From Syncephalis fuscata S228 (taxonomy: Eukaryota > Fungi > Zoopagomycota): a stretch of 64,000 bases of DNA. Below the pieces are notes generated by a model. The model had not been told where the DNA came from. It ran no database searches and saw only the letters and a list, made by a program, of their open reading frames with translations. Both the position numbers and the translations under genes were made by a program. The DNA is taken from assembly GCA_025786725.1 (NCBI GenBank), contig JAHLTZ010000049.1, positions 1 to 64,000 on the forward strand, written 5' to 3'. Shown here one piece after another: positions 35,683-48,390 of this stretch (positions within the stretch are counted from its first letter, which is position 1; every line of letters begins with the position of its first letter).

Positions 35683-35774
35683 ATTTGTTTTTTTGTTATT
35701 ATTTATTAGTATTTTCACAAATGTCGTAGCTAATATGCTATAATTAATATAACTAAAGCTTGAAGGAAGGAAGG

Positions 35775-35870
35775 CTTACCAGCATCTATGGTTTATCAGC
35801 AATAACCTGCGGCAAATATCGGATCGCCGCTGATTCAATATCCGCCACAGACTGATATGGTAAATTCAAT
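35775..35870 (-). ncRNA. Candidate Fanzor omegaRNA scaffold hairpin (copy 2)
   Basis: Same nested stem-loop as 42598-42686. Confidence 0.55.
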
Positions 35871-36130
35871 TTCAGCACCAATACTATGTTCCAATTTCAC
35901 TAATCTTTAACAATTTTTTGTGTATGCACCTGTAATAGATGATAGTGTTATATAAATTGAATTAAACTAAATCGTATTCAAATTAAATACTGTAAATTTT
36001 ATGACAATTAACAACTAGACGTTTCATGGCATTGATAGGGACAAGGATTGGCAAGTTGTCACACCATATGTTGATTTATGATCAATACAGTGTAGACATG
36101 TATCAAAGTACTGGCATTTTGTATGTAGTT
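35775..36130 (-). mobile_element. Second, strongly decayed Fanzor 3' remnant with a conserved terminal block
   Basis: Minus-strand remnants TCLHC...LANPCPYQ...KRLVVNCHKI, then an intron-like gt...tattacag, then 163 nt nearly identical to 42524-42686. Confidence 0.75.
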
Positions 36131-36787
36131 GTCAGCTAATATGTGGCCAAAATTGCTGACTCATATGGCCTTTACTTGCATAACATAATCAACGAGCGGT
36201 ATGTGCATAAATTGGATAAAGATTATCCGGCATTCCCTTTAAAAAAATAACATCCGACTAACCATCATGCGGTGCAATAGATCGCTCATGGAGTGTTGCT
36301 AGATCCACAAGTCTATTAGACATAGTATAACTAAGGCTTGAGCGAAGGAAGGCTGCACTGGCCACTTGCCGCATGATCATAGTAATGTGGTTTGCTATAA
36401 ATAAATCTTTTGAGTTAAAAGAAATATCAAGTGGATTGGTTTGTTAAGTATTTTGGTATGCACAACCAGCTCTCTTCTATTTGTTATTGAACCTATAACA
36501 TTCCTCCTTTAAATCGAGATATTTAAAGCAGCAGTATCAAGCAAATGTACTACTTTCTATTAGCTATTTGTTATTATTCCTTTCTCAACACTTTGTGCTC
36601 GCTTTTTGTATAACTTTAATCATCTTCAGCAAATATTCTATTGTTTCTGTTTATTATTAAGACGATTTAATAATACTGAATTATTGTAAAGTGTTTCTTG
36701 ACACCATCCTATTACTGCATTGATATCTATTAATTGTATTTGGCCAGCTGCCGGCTTTATTGCCAAGAATAAACAAAGCTAGCTATT

Positions 36788-40240: not shown

Positions 40241-40529
40241 GTTATATTGTTAATATGAGTGAATTAATAATGGTGTGAAAATAACATCATCAGAAATGTG
40301 AACAAATGAGATGTCATTTAATTTCCAAAAAACACTCATTATTGTAGAACAATTAAAAGCGATTACGTGATACAATGCCATCTTATGCATGATGTACTAA
40401 AAGAGGTAGTACTTTATGCTTTTTATAGCTTTTTTATATGTGGTACATATATATGATATACATTCATCTAAAATAAACGTACTCAATTATACCCATATTT
40501 TATTGCTTTATAACAAACAATATGTCTTA

Positions 40530-42686
40530 GAATACATGTTTGTTGCGCGTCAATTTTCTTAAATCAAGTATACGTAGTATTGGCTGGAAACAAGAGTATT
40601 TAACCCGTTTAGAATGTCTTGTTATCAATGCCAATACCATTGTCACGCATACCTATGCTTTTGCAAGGTACATATTTATAAAAGAACTTGGCTTAAATAA
40701 GGACTTTGATATTAAAACATATATAAGCCAGAGGTTTTTTAAACAAATATTTTTATTGTTAGTGGATTATTCTATTTGCAAAGGGGGGTTGAGTGATGAA
40801 ACCATCCGAATCAGAGAATTAATAGAACGTCGTTTGAATGAATACCTTGAATATACGAGTTACACACGCATAGAACTTAAATATGCCAGCAAAATAGCCG
40901 AATATAAAGCACAAAGATTGCAACTGCATATTTAAACAATGTGCAAGAACATTTTAATCAACAGTTTTGAAGAGTACTTAATCTTGTTTTGGATGTAAAA
41001 AAAGACAAGAATGAACTAGCAAAGTTTATGCGTGAAAAGAAATTTTCTAAGCAAGATATTAAATTTAACACTAAATTAAATATTATTGATCCGCCACAGT
41101 ATTGAGACAGCATTTTGCAAGTGGCAAACTTTGCAATATTGCTGAAAAGAATCCGCATGCCCATCAAATAATAAAGCCCGTACTTGATGCGTATCCAGAA
41201 AAGCACAAATCTGGTGGATAAAATTACAAGTTTAGCAAAGATTCGATTTACTATGATGTCAAGGCTCATCCAATTAATCATGTAAATGCCTACTTCAAGC
41301 TGGCCACCACCTGTGAGGCCAATTTTTCAAAAACATTTCAATGTTTTCCGATACGTACTTATGGGTACCATCCTATATGCAAATTGACACAGAAATACTG
41401 TGTCGCCATATATTGGATAAAATCCATGAGATTTTTCTAACAAGATGGACGCATGGGAGCAAATTGTTGATTTGAATAACAGAATATTTAAACGCAGCGG
41501 ACCTTTGGAAGATTCAATGCAATTCTATGACTCCATTCAAACAGATGGCGTAAGTGTTACAATAATTAAACAAAATAAAGACACCAAAAACAAATACAGC
41601 GCTGGTCATAAACGAAAAGATGCCGCACTATCTACCGAATTTCAATATATACATGGAATAAATAAAGAAGCTTTGACACAAACTGTCGGCAAGTGTGTGT
41701 TAATTGACCCGCACAGAAGAGATTTGATGAACTGCATGCATGAAAACAGTAAAAGTAATGATCGCAAAATTTTTAGATACACTTCCAACCAAAGGCACAA
41801 AGACATAAAAGACAAAAGATACAGAAGAATCATGGAAACCTAATGAGAGAAAAGCTTACTGTTCAAAATGATGAAAAAGATTTATCTAATAACTTGACTG
41901 CTCAAAAGAACGATAAAAAAGTATTTGATTTGTTACCTGTTCAAAAGGCTAGAACAATTTATCCATTTATTCGTGTAAATCGGTTTATTTGGAAAAGTAT
42001 ATCGTGTATATTTCTGCTCGTGCAGAAGCCGCTGTTACTCTGGTTCCATATTATAGCACCAAAAGAACCAATCATTCGCAATCAAATAATTCTTTATTTA
42101 AAAAGCTTAAATTATTGGCTTATATCAGAAAACTGCAAGCTGATCAAAAACTGGTAAAAAGATTGAAAGACAAGTTTGGACAGGATACTGTGTTGATTTT
42201 TAATAATTGTTCTGCTTGCAATGTACAATTTCAAGGGCCTATTCGAGGCATTGGCATAAAAGAAATGCTTTAGAAAAATGGATTTGAAATTTTTTTATTG
42301 ATGAGTACAATACATCCAAGACTTGTCCATCTTGTGGAAATTGTACTTTGGAAACATTTCATAAGGTTGTCAATACTTGCCTTATTCAAGACAAAAAGGG
42401 CCAGCTTTTATTTGTTCCAAACTCTTAAAACGATATAAAAAAGGTCAATGGTTACATGTCATGAGCTATTAAAGTGCATAATTTGGATATAGTATATTTG
42501 ATTCATCTAACATTATTGTAATTTATTACAGGTGCATACACAAAAAATTGTTAAAAATTAGTGAAATTGGAACATAGTATTGGTGCTGAAATTGAATTTA
42601 CCATATCAGTCTGTGGCGGATATTGAATCAGCGGCGATCCGATATTTGCCGCAGGTTATTGCTGATAAACCATAGATGTTGGTAAG
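40530..42686 (+). mobile_element. Fanzor1-like (eukaryotic TnpB) element, pseudogenised
   Basis: KSSIRSIGW...THTYAFARYIF, IQTDGVSVT, RuvC-I CVLIDPHRRDL, RYTSNQR, KLKLLAYIRK.QADQKLVKRLKDKFG, GPIRGIG, RuvC-II/Zn finger DEYNTSKTCPSC, VTCHELLK, intron ~42474-42531 and a degenerate RuvC-III. Many frameshifts plus in-frame stops at 41841 and 42271. Confidence 0.9.
42598..42686 (+). ncRNA. Candidate Fanzor omegaRNA scaffold hairpin (copy 1)
   Basis: Nested stem UUACCA/UGGUAA, UAUCAGU/GCUGAUA, CUGUGGCGGAUAUUG/CGAUAUUUGCCGCAG with five G.U pairs, at the 3' end of a Fanzor ORF. Confidence 0.6.
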
Positions 42687-42922
42687 TTTATAAAAAGTCG
42701 CTATATATAATTTATTAAAATAAAATTATTCATTATTATAAATGCACGTGATTGATCGTGTGGAAAAATGGCACTACCGATCGGCATAGCCATTGGCCGA
42801 TGACGCGGCAGTGCGTAATTTCTCGTTGCCGCTCCGTAGACGGACAGTAGCTTCTTTCTTTTAACATTATTGTTTGCACGTTTATTTGTTTAATAGTATA
42901 CAAAGATTACACATTGCCTGCC

Positions 42923-44085
42923 ATGGCCGACACTACAATTGACACAAAAAATGTTGCTGTCGCTTCACAGGAGGTAGCTGCTGCTGCCAATTCCACACTG
43001 GCCAACTCGGTCAAGTCATTTGTATCGGGTGGCTTTGGCGGTATGTGTCTTGTGGCTGCAGGCCATCCGCTCGATCTTATTAAGGTCCGCTTGCAAGCAT
43101 CGACGCAATATAGCGGTATGATGGACTGTGTTCGCAAGACGGTGGCCAAAGATGGCATACGTGGCCTCTATCGCGGCATGGCAGCTCCTCTGGTTGGTAT
43201 TACGCCCATCTACGCTGTCTGCTTCTGGGGCTACGACCTGGGTAAACGTCTATCACAAAAGTTCTATCATCAGGTATGTGCTATTGTTGGTTAAACACTG
43301 AATACAAACGATTAATAATGTGTGTGTATGTATGTGTGTATTAGGACGCTAGCGAGCCATTAACCATTGGCCAAATCTGCTTTGCGGGTGGATTTAGTGC
43401 ACTACCAGCTACTGTACTAATGACACCAATTGAACGTGTCAAATGCATTATCCAGATCCAATCTACACTGCCTGATAGTCAAGCCAAATACGCTGGGCCA
43501 ATGGATGCGGCGAAAGGCATCTGGCGCGAATCAGGTATTCGTGGCCTATACAAGGGCACGACCGCCACACTGCTACGTGATGGTCCAGGCAGTGTAGCTT
43601 ATTTTGGCGCATATGAATTCTTCAAAAAAACTTTTACACCAGCTGGAAAAGGTCCTGCAGATTTAAGTCCCGTGGCCGTATTTTGCGCTGGTGGTCTAGC
43701 TGGCATGGCCAACTGGTCGGTCGCTATTGTAAGTCATTATTTAAATAACGCCAATCACTAATCTAACACACTCATTTATTAATCGTTAATCTAATACGCA
43801 ATCTATTTATTATATATAGCCGGCTGATGTATTAAAGTCTCGTCAACAAACGGCACCGCCTGGCACCTACACCGGCCTTACCGATGTATTTGTAAAATTG
43901 ATACGCAATGAAGGACCCAAGGCATTGTTCCGTGGTTTAGGCCCAGCAATGTTGCGTGCTTTCCCGGCAAATGCAGCCTGCTTCCTTGGTACGTATATTT
44001 GAAATAGGATGTGTGTTAATCAATACTGATTTGCGTAATTTTAGGTGTTGAAGTCTCACTCAAAGTGATTAATTCCGTTTTCTAA
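42923..44085 (+). CDS. CRC1: Mitochondrial carnitine/acylcarnitine carrier (SLC25A20-like), 4 exons
   Basis: [64 protein letters not shown]. Confidence 0.93.
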
Positions 44086-44513
44086 TCGGCATTTCTACTT
44101 CTTGTTAGCTCATAATGTCTTTCAGAATCAATAACTCTGGATAGTACACAAAACAATGTGTCATAATAAACCAATCAACTTTCCTCCTTTAAACTTTATT
44201 TATAAATCGCAATAATTGTGTAGTTAAAACAGGTCCAAGAGACTGACTCGCTGTCTCAGTGAAGCTATTAAGCTACCTTCTTGACAACTCGATCAATAAG
44301 TGCCTGTAAAACAACAAGGTAGACATATGAGTCAAACCTGTCAACGCACTTTAACAACCATGTTTTAGATGCTTGTATTAAAAGTACTTAGTGGCAGCTT
44401 TCGCGTCTGTCGATGTTCTTTTGCCATCAATTCATTTTCAACTGCTACCATTATAGTATATTCGTTATAGCATTTACTGCTTACCATTCATTAATATCTT
44501 ATAATCGTTCATT

Positions 44514-46002
44514 ATGTCTGGAACTGCTGCTGCTGCTGATACTGCTGCTAATACTGCTGCTGCTGCCAATATCGCTGCACAGCCTACCGCTGCTGCTGCC
44601 AATAATGCTGCTGCTGCCAATATAGCTGCACAGCCTGCCACCGCCGCTACTACCGCCGCAACAGACCCAACGCCAATCAACCCAGCCACCGACAGCGCGG
44701 CTGGGGGAGCACAAGGAAAGCCATATGTGATCTATATCATCTTTTACTCGATGTACCATCATGTGTACAAGATTGCACAAAAGATAGAAGAAGGTGTCAA
44801 AAGAGTGCCGAACGTTGAAGTGAAAATGTTTCGTGTAGAAGAAACATTGCCAGCTGAAGGTAAGTTTCATTATGGCTTATACAATGTTTATTTATTTGTA
44901 TAATAGTTTTGACACTAATGCACGCCGCACCAACACTTGATATTCCGGTTATCAAGGCGGCCGATCTGCCCAATGCCGATGGCTATTTGTTCGGTACACC
45001 GTAAGTACAGCTATGATGATCCAATGATTGCAATGCTTATTGTTGATGTAGAACACGATATGGTATTATGTCTGGTGCAATGAAGGCATTCTGGGATACT
45101 ACCGGCGGATTGTGGATGAAGTAGGTATAGCAGCGTTTAGCTAATTAATGATATATTACTTACACCATCAACAGAGGTGCATTAAAAAATAAAATGGCTG
45201 GTTTATTCTTTTCAACCGGCTCCCAGCATGGAGGGCAAGAAACGACCGCACTTACTTTCCTTACAACGTTTGCGCATCAAGGCATCATTTATGTACCATT
45301 AGGTAGGTAGCTGTTCTATTTATAATAGCTGTGCTAATGCTAGCCTATATTCAGGTAATTTGGAACCTATGACCAGACTAGACCAAATTGTAGGTGGTAG
45401 CTATTATGGCTCTGGCACTATTGCTGGCGCTGATGGATCACGTAATCCATCCGAAATTGAATACGAACTAGCTTTGACCCATGTAAGATACTTCAAATAT
45501 GATTAACAATTCATTAATCGCCTATATTCTTGGTTACTAGGGCGAGCAATTTGCTACTACACTGTCCGACTACATGACAGGCGTACGAAACCGTCATGGA
45601 GTGGCTGCACCATCGCAGGCTCCTGCTTCCACTGGCGCCACCAATGTAAGTTGGCATGCACGCAGTTTATTAATATTTGTTTTACTAACTTAACTGGTTA
45701 GGCTGCCACAACTCAGTCTGCTACAAGTGCACAACCGGCGGCTGCTGGTGCCCAGCCTGCTGCTGCTGCTGCACCCACTGCTGCCGCACCTACTGCTGCC
45801 GTGCCCACTGCTGCTGCGCCCACTGCTGCTGCTACCGCTCCAAACCCTGTAGCACAAGGTAATTAAATAAATGCTAGTTACCAATTACCGTGTATTTACT
45901 AATTTATTATTAACGATCATTAATTGAATTATTTAAGCTGCCAGTGCGCCCATAGGCAAACGGAAAAGTTTGCTAAGTCGTGTGATGAAGAAGCTTGGTT
46001 AG
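44514..46002 (+). CDS. WrbA/Pst2/Ycp4-type flavodoxin-like NAD(P)H:quinone oxidoreductase with Ala-rich extensions
   Basis: YIIFYSMYHHV, VEETLP, ADGYLFGTPTRYG, FWDTTGGLW, STGSQHGGQETT, GGSYYGSGTIAGADGSR. Confidence 0.92.
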
Positions 46003-46189: not shown

Positions 46190-48390
46190 TTTTTTTCTTG
46201 TTTTATAAAATAAATACACCGCTTTTCAATTTTATTTAGAAACACACTTTGTTTTCTTGTAATGGCGTTCACCACAAATTAAACATTCTTTAATAACACG
46301 CTTTCTTTTTTTGATAGCCGTTTCACTAGTAGTTTGTATTTTTTCTTCAATAAAAATGCTTGTTTCAATGTTATTAATGCTAGTGTTTACAGAGCATGTT
46401 CTTGTATTGTGTCCTTTTGAGCTACAATTGTGACAAGCATATCGCTGAGAGGCTTCCAAAGCTTCACCACAAATCTAATTCTTTTAACTTTTGGTCTACT
46501 AGCTTTCTTCGTTATTGTCGGTGGCAAAACAAAATGTCTGCGTAATTGATGCATTTCAACCGGACAAATTTCTAGAGCATATACTTTTTTTAGATAATTA
46601 ACGGTGTAAGATTTATCAATAAAATCATCTAATAAGAGCTTAAGATTCTTCAAAATTATTGCCACATGACTACAAACAAACTTCATCTCTTCCCAGTATC
46701 CACATGTGCAGGTTTTTGCAGTTAAATCTACTGTTCTGACAATACCAGACTTGATATCTTTAACTTGAAATTTGGTATCAGAATAATCGTCAATTATATA
46801 ATTATTAGCGTCAGTTAATGTTGATTTATACAACAAATAGCTATTATTAGTTAACAATCCTTGAGCTTGTGAATACTTAATTCTACGCTTATTCAACAAA
46901 GTTCCAACTTTGGCGACAAATCCAGTAAAAAAGTGATAATGGGATTTGTTCCAAAGATTGTTCATCCATGAGTTCAATGACTCTGATGAATTTGAAGTAA
47001 CGCAACCAAATCTTAGCCATTTAAAAGATGATCTAGCCCAGTTTTCTGCTGAGTCTATTAGCTTGTTATAAGCTGGCTCATTTAATGACCGTATCACTTT
47101 CATTGAATCTAAAAATAAATTAGTACTTTGAATGTAATTTAAATAAATATAAATACCATTAAATTCTTTACTAGTTAAAGCTTTTGCAGCTTTCCATATT
47201 AATCCATTAAGCTTTGTTTTAAATTCAGCATTGATGTTTCTTTCAATATGAGCAACACATGCAGAGTGGTGTGCCAAGGGAAATACAGTCCTTATCGAAG
47301 ACTCTATTCCTTTATCTCTGTCGCTAATGATGACTTGATTTTTTTCTCTTAATTCAGGTATTGAATCTGATAGATGTTTAAGAAAATAGACCCAGTTGTT
47401 TTTATTTCATAAGATACTATAGCAACAGCCAAAGGGAAAATATTGTTATTTCCATCTTTAACAACTGCAGTAAGAGCAACACCGCCATAAGAAGATCTTA
47501 GATGGCAGACATCAATTAGCAGTACTTTACGAGTATAGTGGTAAGCTTTAATAGCTGATGAAGGACATAAAAATGCCCTTTCAAAGTTACCAGACTGGTT
47601 CTGCGAGAAGTGCTGAACAGAACCCGGATTAAAATGTTTGAATTTGATAAGGTAATCTTTAATAAATGAAAAAGAATTGATATTGCTGTTAATATCATTC
47701 TTTTTCATCGAATTAAGGGCGGACCAAGCTTTGTAATAAGAAATATCACTCCTGTTGAACTATTACAGCTGTTAGTGTATATTAAATAATCAAATATGTA
47801 CTACTTTGATAATTTTCTTTGTACATCTTTTGGTTTTACAATTGAAAATGTAGCAACATCATTCGTAATATATTTAGCAATAGACTTAATAGTACCATTA
47901 CCCGTGTTATATGGACAGTCATTAAATGCTCAAGATTGCATTGAACAATCTTTACTAAGCCAGTTTTCTGCTTTCTGGCAGTCAAAACAAACTGATATTT
48001 GTTGCTAAAATGGTCTTCATGAGGGCAAATAAGCTGTAATCTTGTTGAATCACTATTTTTCCTCTTAAAATTGCAACCGTTAACAAGCTTAAACTCGTCA
48101 ACAGCAATCCTCGGTTCTTCAATGCTGTTAAATATAGCTTTTTTAAATAGTTTGGTAGACATTGCGATAGGTTTTTCAAAACGGCGTATCTCGATAAATA
48201 AAAGCAAAGAACAATTTATTTTTATTTATTAAATTTATTATAATAAACTTAAAAAATAATTTATTACAATAAAGTTTAAAACAATGTATTTTTCTAAATA
48301 AAAGTGAAAAGCAGTGTATTTATTTTATAAAACAAGAAAAAAAGTATTTCTGTAATTAAAGTTGAGAAACGGTGTATTTTTCAAAATTTT
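46190..48390 (-). mobile_element. Mutator-like (MULE) DNA transposon with frameshifted transposase
   Basis: LIDVCHL..YGG...DGNNNIFPLAVA, IISDRDKGI, CVAHIERN, TSNSSESLN, SWIM finger CTCGYWEEMKFVCSH, zinc knuckle CHNCSSKGHNTRTC. Inverted repeats at 46191-46228 and 48305-48342. Confidence 0.9.

Follow-up and report, generated by a model that had tools for sequence, protein, structure and literature searches.

Two near-identical 163-nt blocks in the genome of the fungus Syncephalis fuscata S228, each lying beside decayed Fanzor coding sequence, probably owe their identity to recent copying, and the block itself is probably the 3′ module of a family of protein-less Fanzor1 remnants (hereafter family 1) that carries a selected RNA fold, likely an omegaRNA scaffold. 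The window analyzed here is the first 64,000 nt of contig JAHLTZ010000049.1 (assembly GCA_025786725.1, forward strand), and positions are those of the window unless a contig is named. A sequence-only reading of the window had proposed that the RNA rather than the protein is being maintained at the two loci, giving a dispersed guide repertoire for a trans-acting or domesticated Fanzor. On the evidence below, the claim that a eukaryote maintains orphan guide RNAs by selection falls, and ordinary recent copying between two transposon relics takes its place. Two things keep their value: covariation among protein-less remnants alone has defined a candidate Fanzor1 omegaRNA scaffold, and copy A shows a 3′ RNA module that was grafted to a different Fanzor lineage at a conserved splice-site microhomology.

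The block and its Fanzor context

Copies A (42524-42686, plus strand) and B (35937-35775, minus strand) align without gaps and differ at two of 163 positions, and a repeat finder also returned them as an inverted pair (arms 35775-35940 and 42521-42686, 166 nt, 98%). The mismatches fall at 42556 (A in copy A, G in copy B) and 42679 (T in copy A, C in copy B), and at both sites it is B that carries the family state. Upstream of the block, the identity of the two copies falls to 70% in the intron relic and 44% in the zinc-finger remnant, and downstream they are unrelated. Stops occur in all three frames of the block in both copies, and the NRD motif is absent. The descriptive part of the sequence-only reading, that is, two 163-nt blocks with two differences, diverged zinc-finger and intron remnants upstream, and a block with neither an intact frame nor NRD, was therefore accurate. 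The features discussed in this study are collected in Table 1.

Table 1. Positions of the features in the window and the basis on which each was placed
Feature	Position	Strand	Basis
Copy A of the block: splice-acceptor relic, relic last Fanzor exon with a ~25-nt deletion, structured RNA	42521..42686	+	alignment, repeat finder
Copy B of the block: 98-99% identical to A; element truncated at GGTA(AG)	35775..35940	-	alignment, repeat finder
Decayed Fanzor1 body, A/A′ lineage	40383..42533 (A′ colinearity to ~42544)	+	96% identical to A′ on contig C24
Intron relic of A (GT...ACAG)	42474..42531	+	intron at the same codon position in an intact metagenomic Fanzor (between ...GLLR and C.NQ.C)
Family-1 zinc-finger remnant and intron relic of B	35941..36094	-	89-90% identical to L003, 44-70% to A
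Recombination junction of chimeric copy A: ~11-12 nt microhomology TATTACAGGTG common to the A/A′ lineage and family 1	42522..42533	+	A matches A′ upstream, B downstream
Four-helix RNA fold (model R1) in A	42559..42661	+	RNAalifold, covariance model
R1 helices	H1 42559-64/42656-61; H2 42566-69/42575-78; H3 42579-85/42604-10; H4 (long hairpin) 42611-30/42635-54	+	
Same fold in B (full model match 35784-35905)	35800..35902	-	covariance model
Conserved single-stranded motif (G)CTGATAAACCATAGAT, directly 3′ of the fold; kept even where relatives lost helices	42662..42677	+	family alignment
3′ module tail in A, homologous to the tails of L003, L006/7 and L008; absent from B	42687..42763	+	family alignment
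32-nt direct repeat pair, 88% identical, bracketing the B fragment and 258 nt of genome-unique DNA	35745..35776 and 36323..36354	.	repeat finder
Introns of the neighboring genes	43729-43819, 43988-44043, 44858-44904, 45001-45051, 45121-45174		RNA contigs

In the Fanzor body that precedes copy A, RuvC-I reads ..IDPHRRDL.., where IDPH replaces DPG, and the segment with the zinc knuckle and the alternative RuvC-II Glu reads DEYNTSKTCPSC, in which the Glu stands six residues ahead of CxxC, a spacing regarded as a Fanzor hallmark (PMC10711439). The second-knuckle remnant of copy A, VTCHELLK(/C), is the counterpart of VVCNGLLR in the intact relative P0012. The 132-aa ORF piece upstream of A has 339 homologues, many of them 550-750 aa long and Fanzor1-like, among which P0012 contains LDEYNTSKHCPHC...PTVVCNGLLRCKNQNC...YNRDVAAVCNF. 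Matches to PF07282 in P0012 and the 550-750 aa homologues are weak and Pfam found nothing significant on A's own ORF pieces, for which reason the Fanzor identity of A's body is taken from its homologues. The Fanzor frame of A is broken, and NRD survives in none of A, B, and the family-1 copies; the body appears to be a pseudogene of the Fanzor1 family, without functional membership in it.

The origin of the block can be read from the intron. In the metagenomic relative L075 an intron lies exactly after ...GLLR, and the next exon begins CTNQEC...LWNRD. This intron (57 nt, after ...CHGLLR, at L075:2440-2510 on the ENA metagenome contig) was read through by the gene caller, so that the C-terminus of the predicted protein P0018 is spurious, the true last exon encoding CTNQEC...LWNRDLVGVLNF. 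Because the intron position is shared with L075, the intron-like sequence in the window is a real intron relic and the block a descendant of the last Fanzor1 exon, and the assignment of the flanking remnants to the zinc finger and an intron of Fanzor can stand. The family-1 exons start with CTHQ; with no copy containing NRD, the family-1 progenitor was dead at RuvC-III already.

Members and extent of family 1

A DNA search of the 29.4-Mb genome with the block gave eight matches, from which the covariance model R1 was built, and a search with R1 added two close copies and several distant ones; searching with the upstream part of B gave two more fragments. The close copies lie on contigs C24 (L003), C312 (L004), C223 (L005), C350 (four copies), and C224 (L008, internally deleted), and independent insertions were found on C24, C312, C223, C350, C224, C212, and C314. 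The four C350 copies (L027, L028, L030, and L031, at about 71.2, 80.8, 132.9, and 158.5 kb) are segmental duplicates that include their flanks (96-99% identity over 2.5-3.1 kb), and they were counted as one insertion, each duplicated segment (at least 2.5-3.1 kb) carrying one family-1 element; C350 thus holds a segmental-duplication cluster and not four transpositions. By this count family 1 comprises about 5-6 independent close copies and several degenerate ones.

The close copies are 3′ fragments of about 350-830 nt that have no long ORF upstream, and since the frame-breaking decay of the zinc finger is common to them, the unit multiplied when it was already non-coding. None of the TnpB-type zinc-ribbon matches in the genome, of which there are at least 71, coincides with family 1. 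No conserved left end of the element could be defined, and a search of metagenome and viral contigs with a degenerate 26-nt motif found no relatives. The 5′ part of the unit was also considered as an old duplicate of the block, an idea set aside when it gave no significant self-similarity.

At the other end, the tail of A is 83% identical to that of L003, the agreement running to ...CGTGTGG at 42763 and giving way to divergence beyond it, which places the right end of the element probably at 42763, with variable flanks, as defined mainly by A and L003. The earlier proposal had placed the block at the end of both elements and noted that the identity of A and B stops after GGTAAG. B does end there, but the homology of A to the family continues for a further 77 nt, so GGTAAG is not a scaffold/guide boundary; the motif is not conserved in L003-L005.

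Nor is the block near-invariant across the family. In the same block the other members differ from A and B by 13-29%, and among the independent copies L003-L006 identity is 72% in the RNA core versus 77-81% in the rest of the unit. The C350 duplicates carry nine changes in the 122 nt of the RNA core, though they are 96-99% identical overall. Helices have been lost in L036, L070, L008, and L040/41. In L008 (G000:C224:212460-212585, minus strand) an internal deletion has fused family sequence from further upstream to the hairpin's 3′ arm, and L070 (G000:C212, ~237.1 kb), likewise internally deleted, retains nothing but the outer helix and the GCTGATAAACCATAGAT motif.

Origin of the identity between A and B

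A paralogue of the Fanzor body of copy A, here called A′, lies on the minus strand of C24 (L043, ~576.2-578.7 kb) and shares 96.4% identity with A over 2165 nt. The colinearity of the two stops about 20 nt into the block, past the splice acceptor, and A′ is from there on unrelated to A and unique in the genome. A diverged homologue of the block was sought in A′, and the local alignment score was no better than that of shuffles. Because its 3′ end is unique, A′ might in principle have been truncated and not show the ancestral arrangement; that A and L003 are discordant stands without A′. Compared with L003, copy A is 46% identical in the zinc-finger remnant, 63% in the intron relic, and then 87% in the RNA core, while B keeps a uniform 81-90% across the same junction, which identifies A, and not B, as the recombinant. 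A deletion of ~25 nt is common to A and B and absent in L003-L007 and L030/31. The two mismatches amount to a divergence of 1.2% (95% CI 0.1-4.4%) against about 2.6-3.6% for the split between A and A′, so the copying event would be no older than that split.

The tract of 163 nt can accordingly be read as the overlap of a chimeric junction in A, which sets its 5′ edge, and the truncation of B, which sets its 3′ edge, so that both edges would be structural rather than functional RNA ends. Copy A is a chimera, and its near-identity to B would reflect recent copying and not selective maintenance. The sequence-only reading took near-invariance as a sign that the RNA is maintained, a step that does not survive the divergence of the family, the low conservation of its RNA core, the chimerism of A, and the truncation of B; it had also named one recent gene conversion as the explanation that would overturn it, and the chimeric junction, the shared deletion, and the two mismatches point to essentially that.

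In its short near-identical tract amid diverged or unrelated DNA, its abrupt edges, its shared derived indel, and the discordant relationships across the junction of A, the pair resembles the products of ectopic gene conversion or microhomology-mediated template switching, the partners lying 6.6 kb apart in inverted orientation. In the scenario that we favor, selection on sense-strand pairing would have shaped the fold during the diversification of the family. The 3′ module, composed of the relic last Fanzor exon, the four-helix fold over the old stop, the single-stranded motif, and a tail of ~77 nt, would then have been joined, in its B-lineage form, to the unrelated and already decayed Fanzor of A by non-allelic gene conversion or by template switching at ~11 nt of microhomology in the conserved splice acceptor. 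Copying would have run from B to A, and the tail of B may have been lost later or may already have been missing. The pair departs from such products in that the 5′ junction offers homology of only ~11 nt; conversion and a duplication followed by rearrangement are both possible routes. The direct repeat around B (Table 1) has the look of a repair scar or a long target duplication left behind when B was placed or truncated.

Conservation of the RNA fold

The relic stop codon of the Fanzor gene (TGA, 42624-42626) lies within the 5′ arm of H4. Folded as a single sequence, the plus strand reaches -38.9 kcal/mol and modestly beats shuffles (z -1.9), versus a z of -0.5 for the minus strand. On the family alignment RNAalifold returned four nested helices with 36 pairs, in which 96.8% of the cells (96-97%) are paired across copies that are only ~72% identical, compared with 32-50% in slid registers. 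Four pairs have changed on both sides, and 0 of 500 shuffles reached either the observed covariation score or the percentage paired, in a test on five independent lineages whose support is inflated by the inference of the structure from the same sequences. When the substitutions of each lineage were placed at random, the neutral expectation was 154-156 +/- 3-4 paired cells against the 173 of 180 observed (0 of 20,000 runs, P < 5e-5), and under the most conservative scheme, a shuffle within stems that keeps the exact from-to spectrum, it was 167.4 +/- 2.1 (P = 0.006). The nested hairpin with G.U pairs that had been described on the Fanzor sense strand is confirmed in this way, and the covariation analysis suggested along with it supports the structure.

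G.U cells number 59 and A.C cells 5, G.U making up one third of the paired cells, and these pairs assign the fold to the Fanzor sense strand. Transitions outnumber transversions 41:4 in the stems versus 31:19 outside them (Fisher P = 0.0015). Strand-biased mutation was considered as the source of the G.U excess and rejected, as the spectrum outside the stems is symmetric and the spectrum-preserving simulation was still significant. In the distant relative L037 the base of the hairpin has been kept through compensatory changes. All four stem changes among the C350 duplicates preserve pairing, which gives a weak hint of continuing constraint.

No corresponding signal was found for coding. A 39-codon frame is open in L004-L007, in which changes are spread over the three codon positions without bias (39/36/34) and nonsynonymous changes are about fourfold the synonymous ones; a search with the peptide of the block yielded only the same relics in the genome. 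The history of the family thus appears to have been one of constraint on sense-strand RNA pairing and not on coding. Selection seems to account for about two thirds of the stem substitutions, the other third or so looking neutral, a mixture that fits the divergence of once-active lineages followed by decay in place.

Cognate nuclease and transcription

A peptide search of the genome found no intact Fanzor with the C-terminal exon of family 1. The fold was found neither at the 12 best zinc-ribbon loci nor at the paralogues of the A lineage, and the genome-wide search with R1, in which 150 of ~13,000 candidates were scored, turned up no intact Fanzor with the fold, such as the sequence-only reading had suggested looking for. 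A simple ORF scan of 12 other Fanzor loci gave no long ORF, although introns may hide frames there. The 3′ ends of three metagenomic Fanzor homologues, which are 40-45% identical to the 132-aa query from A, gave no match to R1, a null made uninformative by that distance.

One poly(A)-type RNA run was available as contigs, in which RNA ends, strand, and small RNAs are not resolvable. It covers the neighboring spliced genes well and gives no coverage of the Fanzor body of A. One low-depth contig runs from upstream sequence of the B type into the block and retains the intron, and the transcript of the B-type locus is thus a faint unspliced read-through. With no intact cognate found, several copies without the fold, and only this faint read-through, a working guide repertoire is unsupported.

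Alternative explanations

The proposal that purifying selection keeps the module near-invariant, and that its protein-less loci supply guides made of scaffold plus flank to a trans-acting or domesticated Fanzor, draws on several of the same observations as the reading preferred here: the fold is conserved in the manner of an RNA and without coding constraint, the family spread when it was already non-coding, as the shared zinc-finger decay indicates, the C350 stem changes keep pairing, the B-type locus is weakly transcribed, and the principle is known from bacterial PATEs (PMC10055086). It is nonetheless a decidedly improbable account of the two loci, as chimerism and truncation explain the near-identity, no other part of the unit has diverged as much as the RNA core, which carries nine changes in 122 nt among the C350 duplicates, GGTAAG is not the element end and B has no tail, several relatives have lost helices, no intact Fanzor with the C-terminal exon or the fold was found, and the sole transcript is a low-depth unspliced read-through. 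We also consider it unlikely that the hairpin acts as DNA, or as an RNA other than an omegaRNA, for example as a transposon-end or foldback (MITE-like) repeat, an RNA interference hairpin, or an element of an mRNA 3′UTR. The core is indeed an inverted repeat of ~20 bp within a repeated element, it has no Rfam match, and it is set back from the end by ~100 nt; the preponderance of G.U over A.C, however, fits an RNA read from one strand and is at odds with cruciform or duplex DNA, mutations elsewhere in the element show no strand bias, and three further helices nest around the hairpin with compensatory changes.

A conserved protein-coding exon, bounded by ...ACAG and G/GTAAG, would account for edges that resemble splice sites, for the frame open in L004-L007, and for a start (CTHQ) that matches the CTNQEC of an intact Fanzor. 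This is very unlikely given that every frame is stopped in A and B, that third positions show no bias and nonsynonymous changes exceed synonymous ones by about 4:1, that GGTAAG is not conserved in L003-L005, and that the peptide matches only the same relics in the genome. There is next to no chance that a collapse or mis-join in the assembly made the duplicate, since the two copies, inverted relative to each other on a single contig, each have flanks that are unique and the RNA run, which is independent of the assembly, reproduces the junction between the upstream sequence of B and the block.

Comparison with known systems

The reading that we prefer, a recent copy of a 3′ module from a protein-less Fanzor1 remnant family, invites comparison with the omegaRNA (reRNA) of Fanzor and TnpB, which is encoded at the right end of the transposon (Saito et al. 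2023, PMC10432273; Yoon et al. 2023, PMC10711439). Like these RNAs, the family-1 fold lies on the sense strand of the nuclease, across the 3′ end and the relic stop codon of the Fanzor1 gene, in the relic last exon and 3′UTR downstream of the zinc-knuckle remnant; it has a multi-helix structure conserved with covariation and structure-preserving substitutions in five independent lineages, and the flank past the putative right end varies between copies. Unlike them, it has no protein partner, no cognate nuclease being present among the loci scored, and it matches no described family. Moreover, ~100 nt separate the end of the fold from the putative right end, and a complete scaffold would therefore have to include more than the fold. 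From its position, strand, and structure, the fold is most likely part of the omegaRNA scaffold of the element, and it is a credible new member of this kind of RNA, carried on relic protein-less elements. The present loci are themselves most likely inactive relics.

The sequence-only reading had also stated that protein-less "ghost" omegaRNA loci are known in fungi. We found no paper that describes them, and the documented analogue is bacterial: PATEs are protein-less IS200/IS605 elements that have kept the omegaRNA and need TnpB in trans (Meers et al., PMC10055086). Family 1 resembles PATEs in that it consists of dispersed protein-less copies that retain the RNA-bearing end and spread after the loss of coding; it differs in being eukaryotic and Fanzor1-derived, in its small size (~5-6 independent copies), in the degenerate state of many copies, and in that no trans partner was found. 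A bolder view, to which we attach a low probability, is that Fanzor 3′ RNA modules are exchangeable cassettes: a protein-less family would persist and graft onto unrelated bodies, as in copy A, and some of its loci may feed guides to a Fanzor elsewhere, making it a eukaryotic counterpart of PATEs. If the loci proved to be expressed and bound by a Fanzor, the PATE principle of trans-acting guide-bearing elements would reach into the eukaryotes.

Other features of the region

A scan of 30-48 kb of the window against Rfam at E <= 1 gave no match in the block and returned only a sub-threshold match elsewhere, to the C/D-box snoRNA SNORD58 at 47801-47854 on the plus strand (23.3 bits, below the gathering score of 42; E 0.53). 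Downstream of copy A, at 43046-45300, two spliced genes were confirmed by the RNA contigs, with GT..AG introns of 47-91 nt; the first of these genes looks like a mitochondrial carrier.
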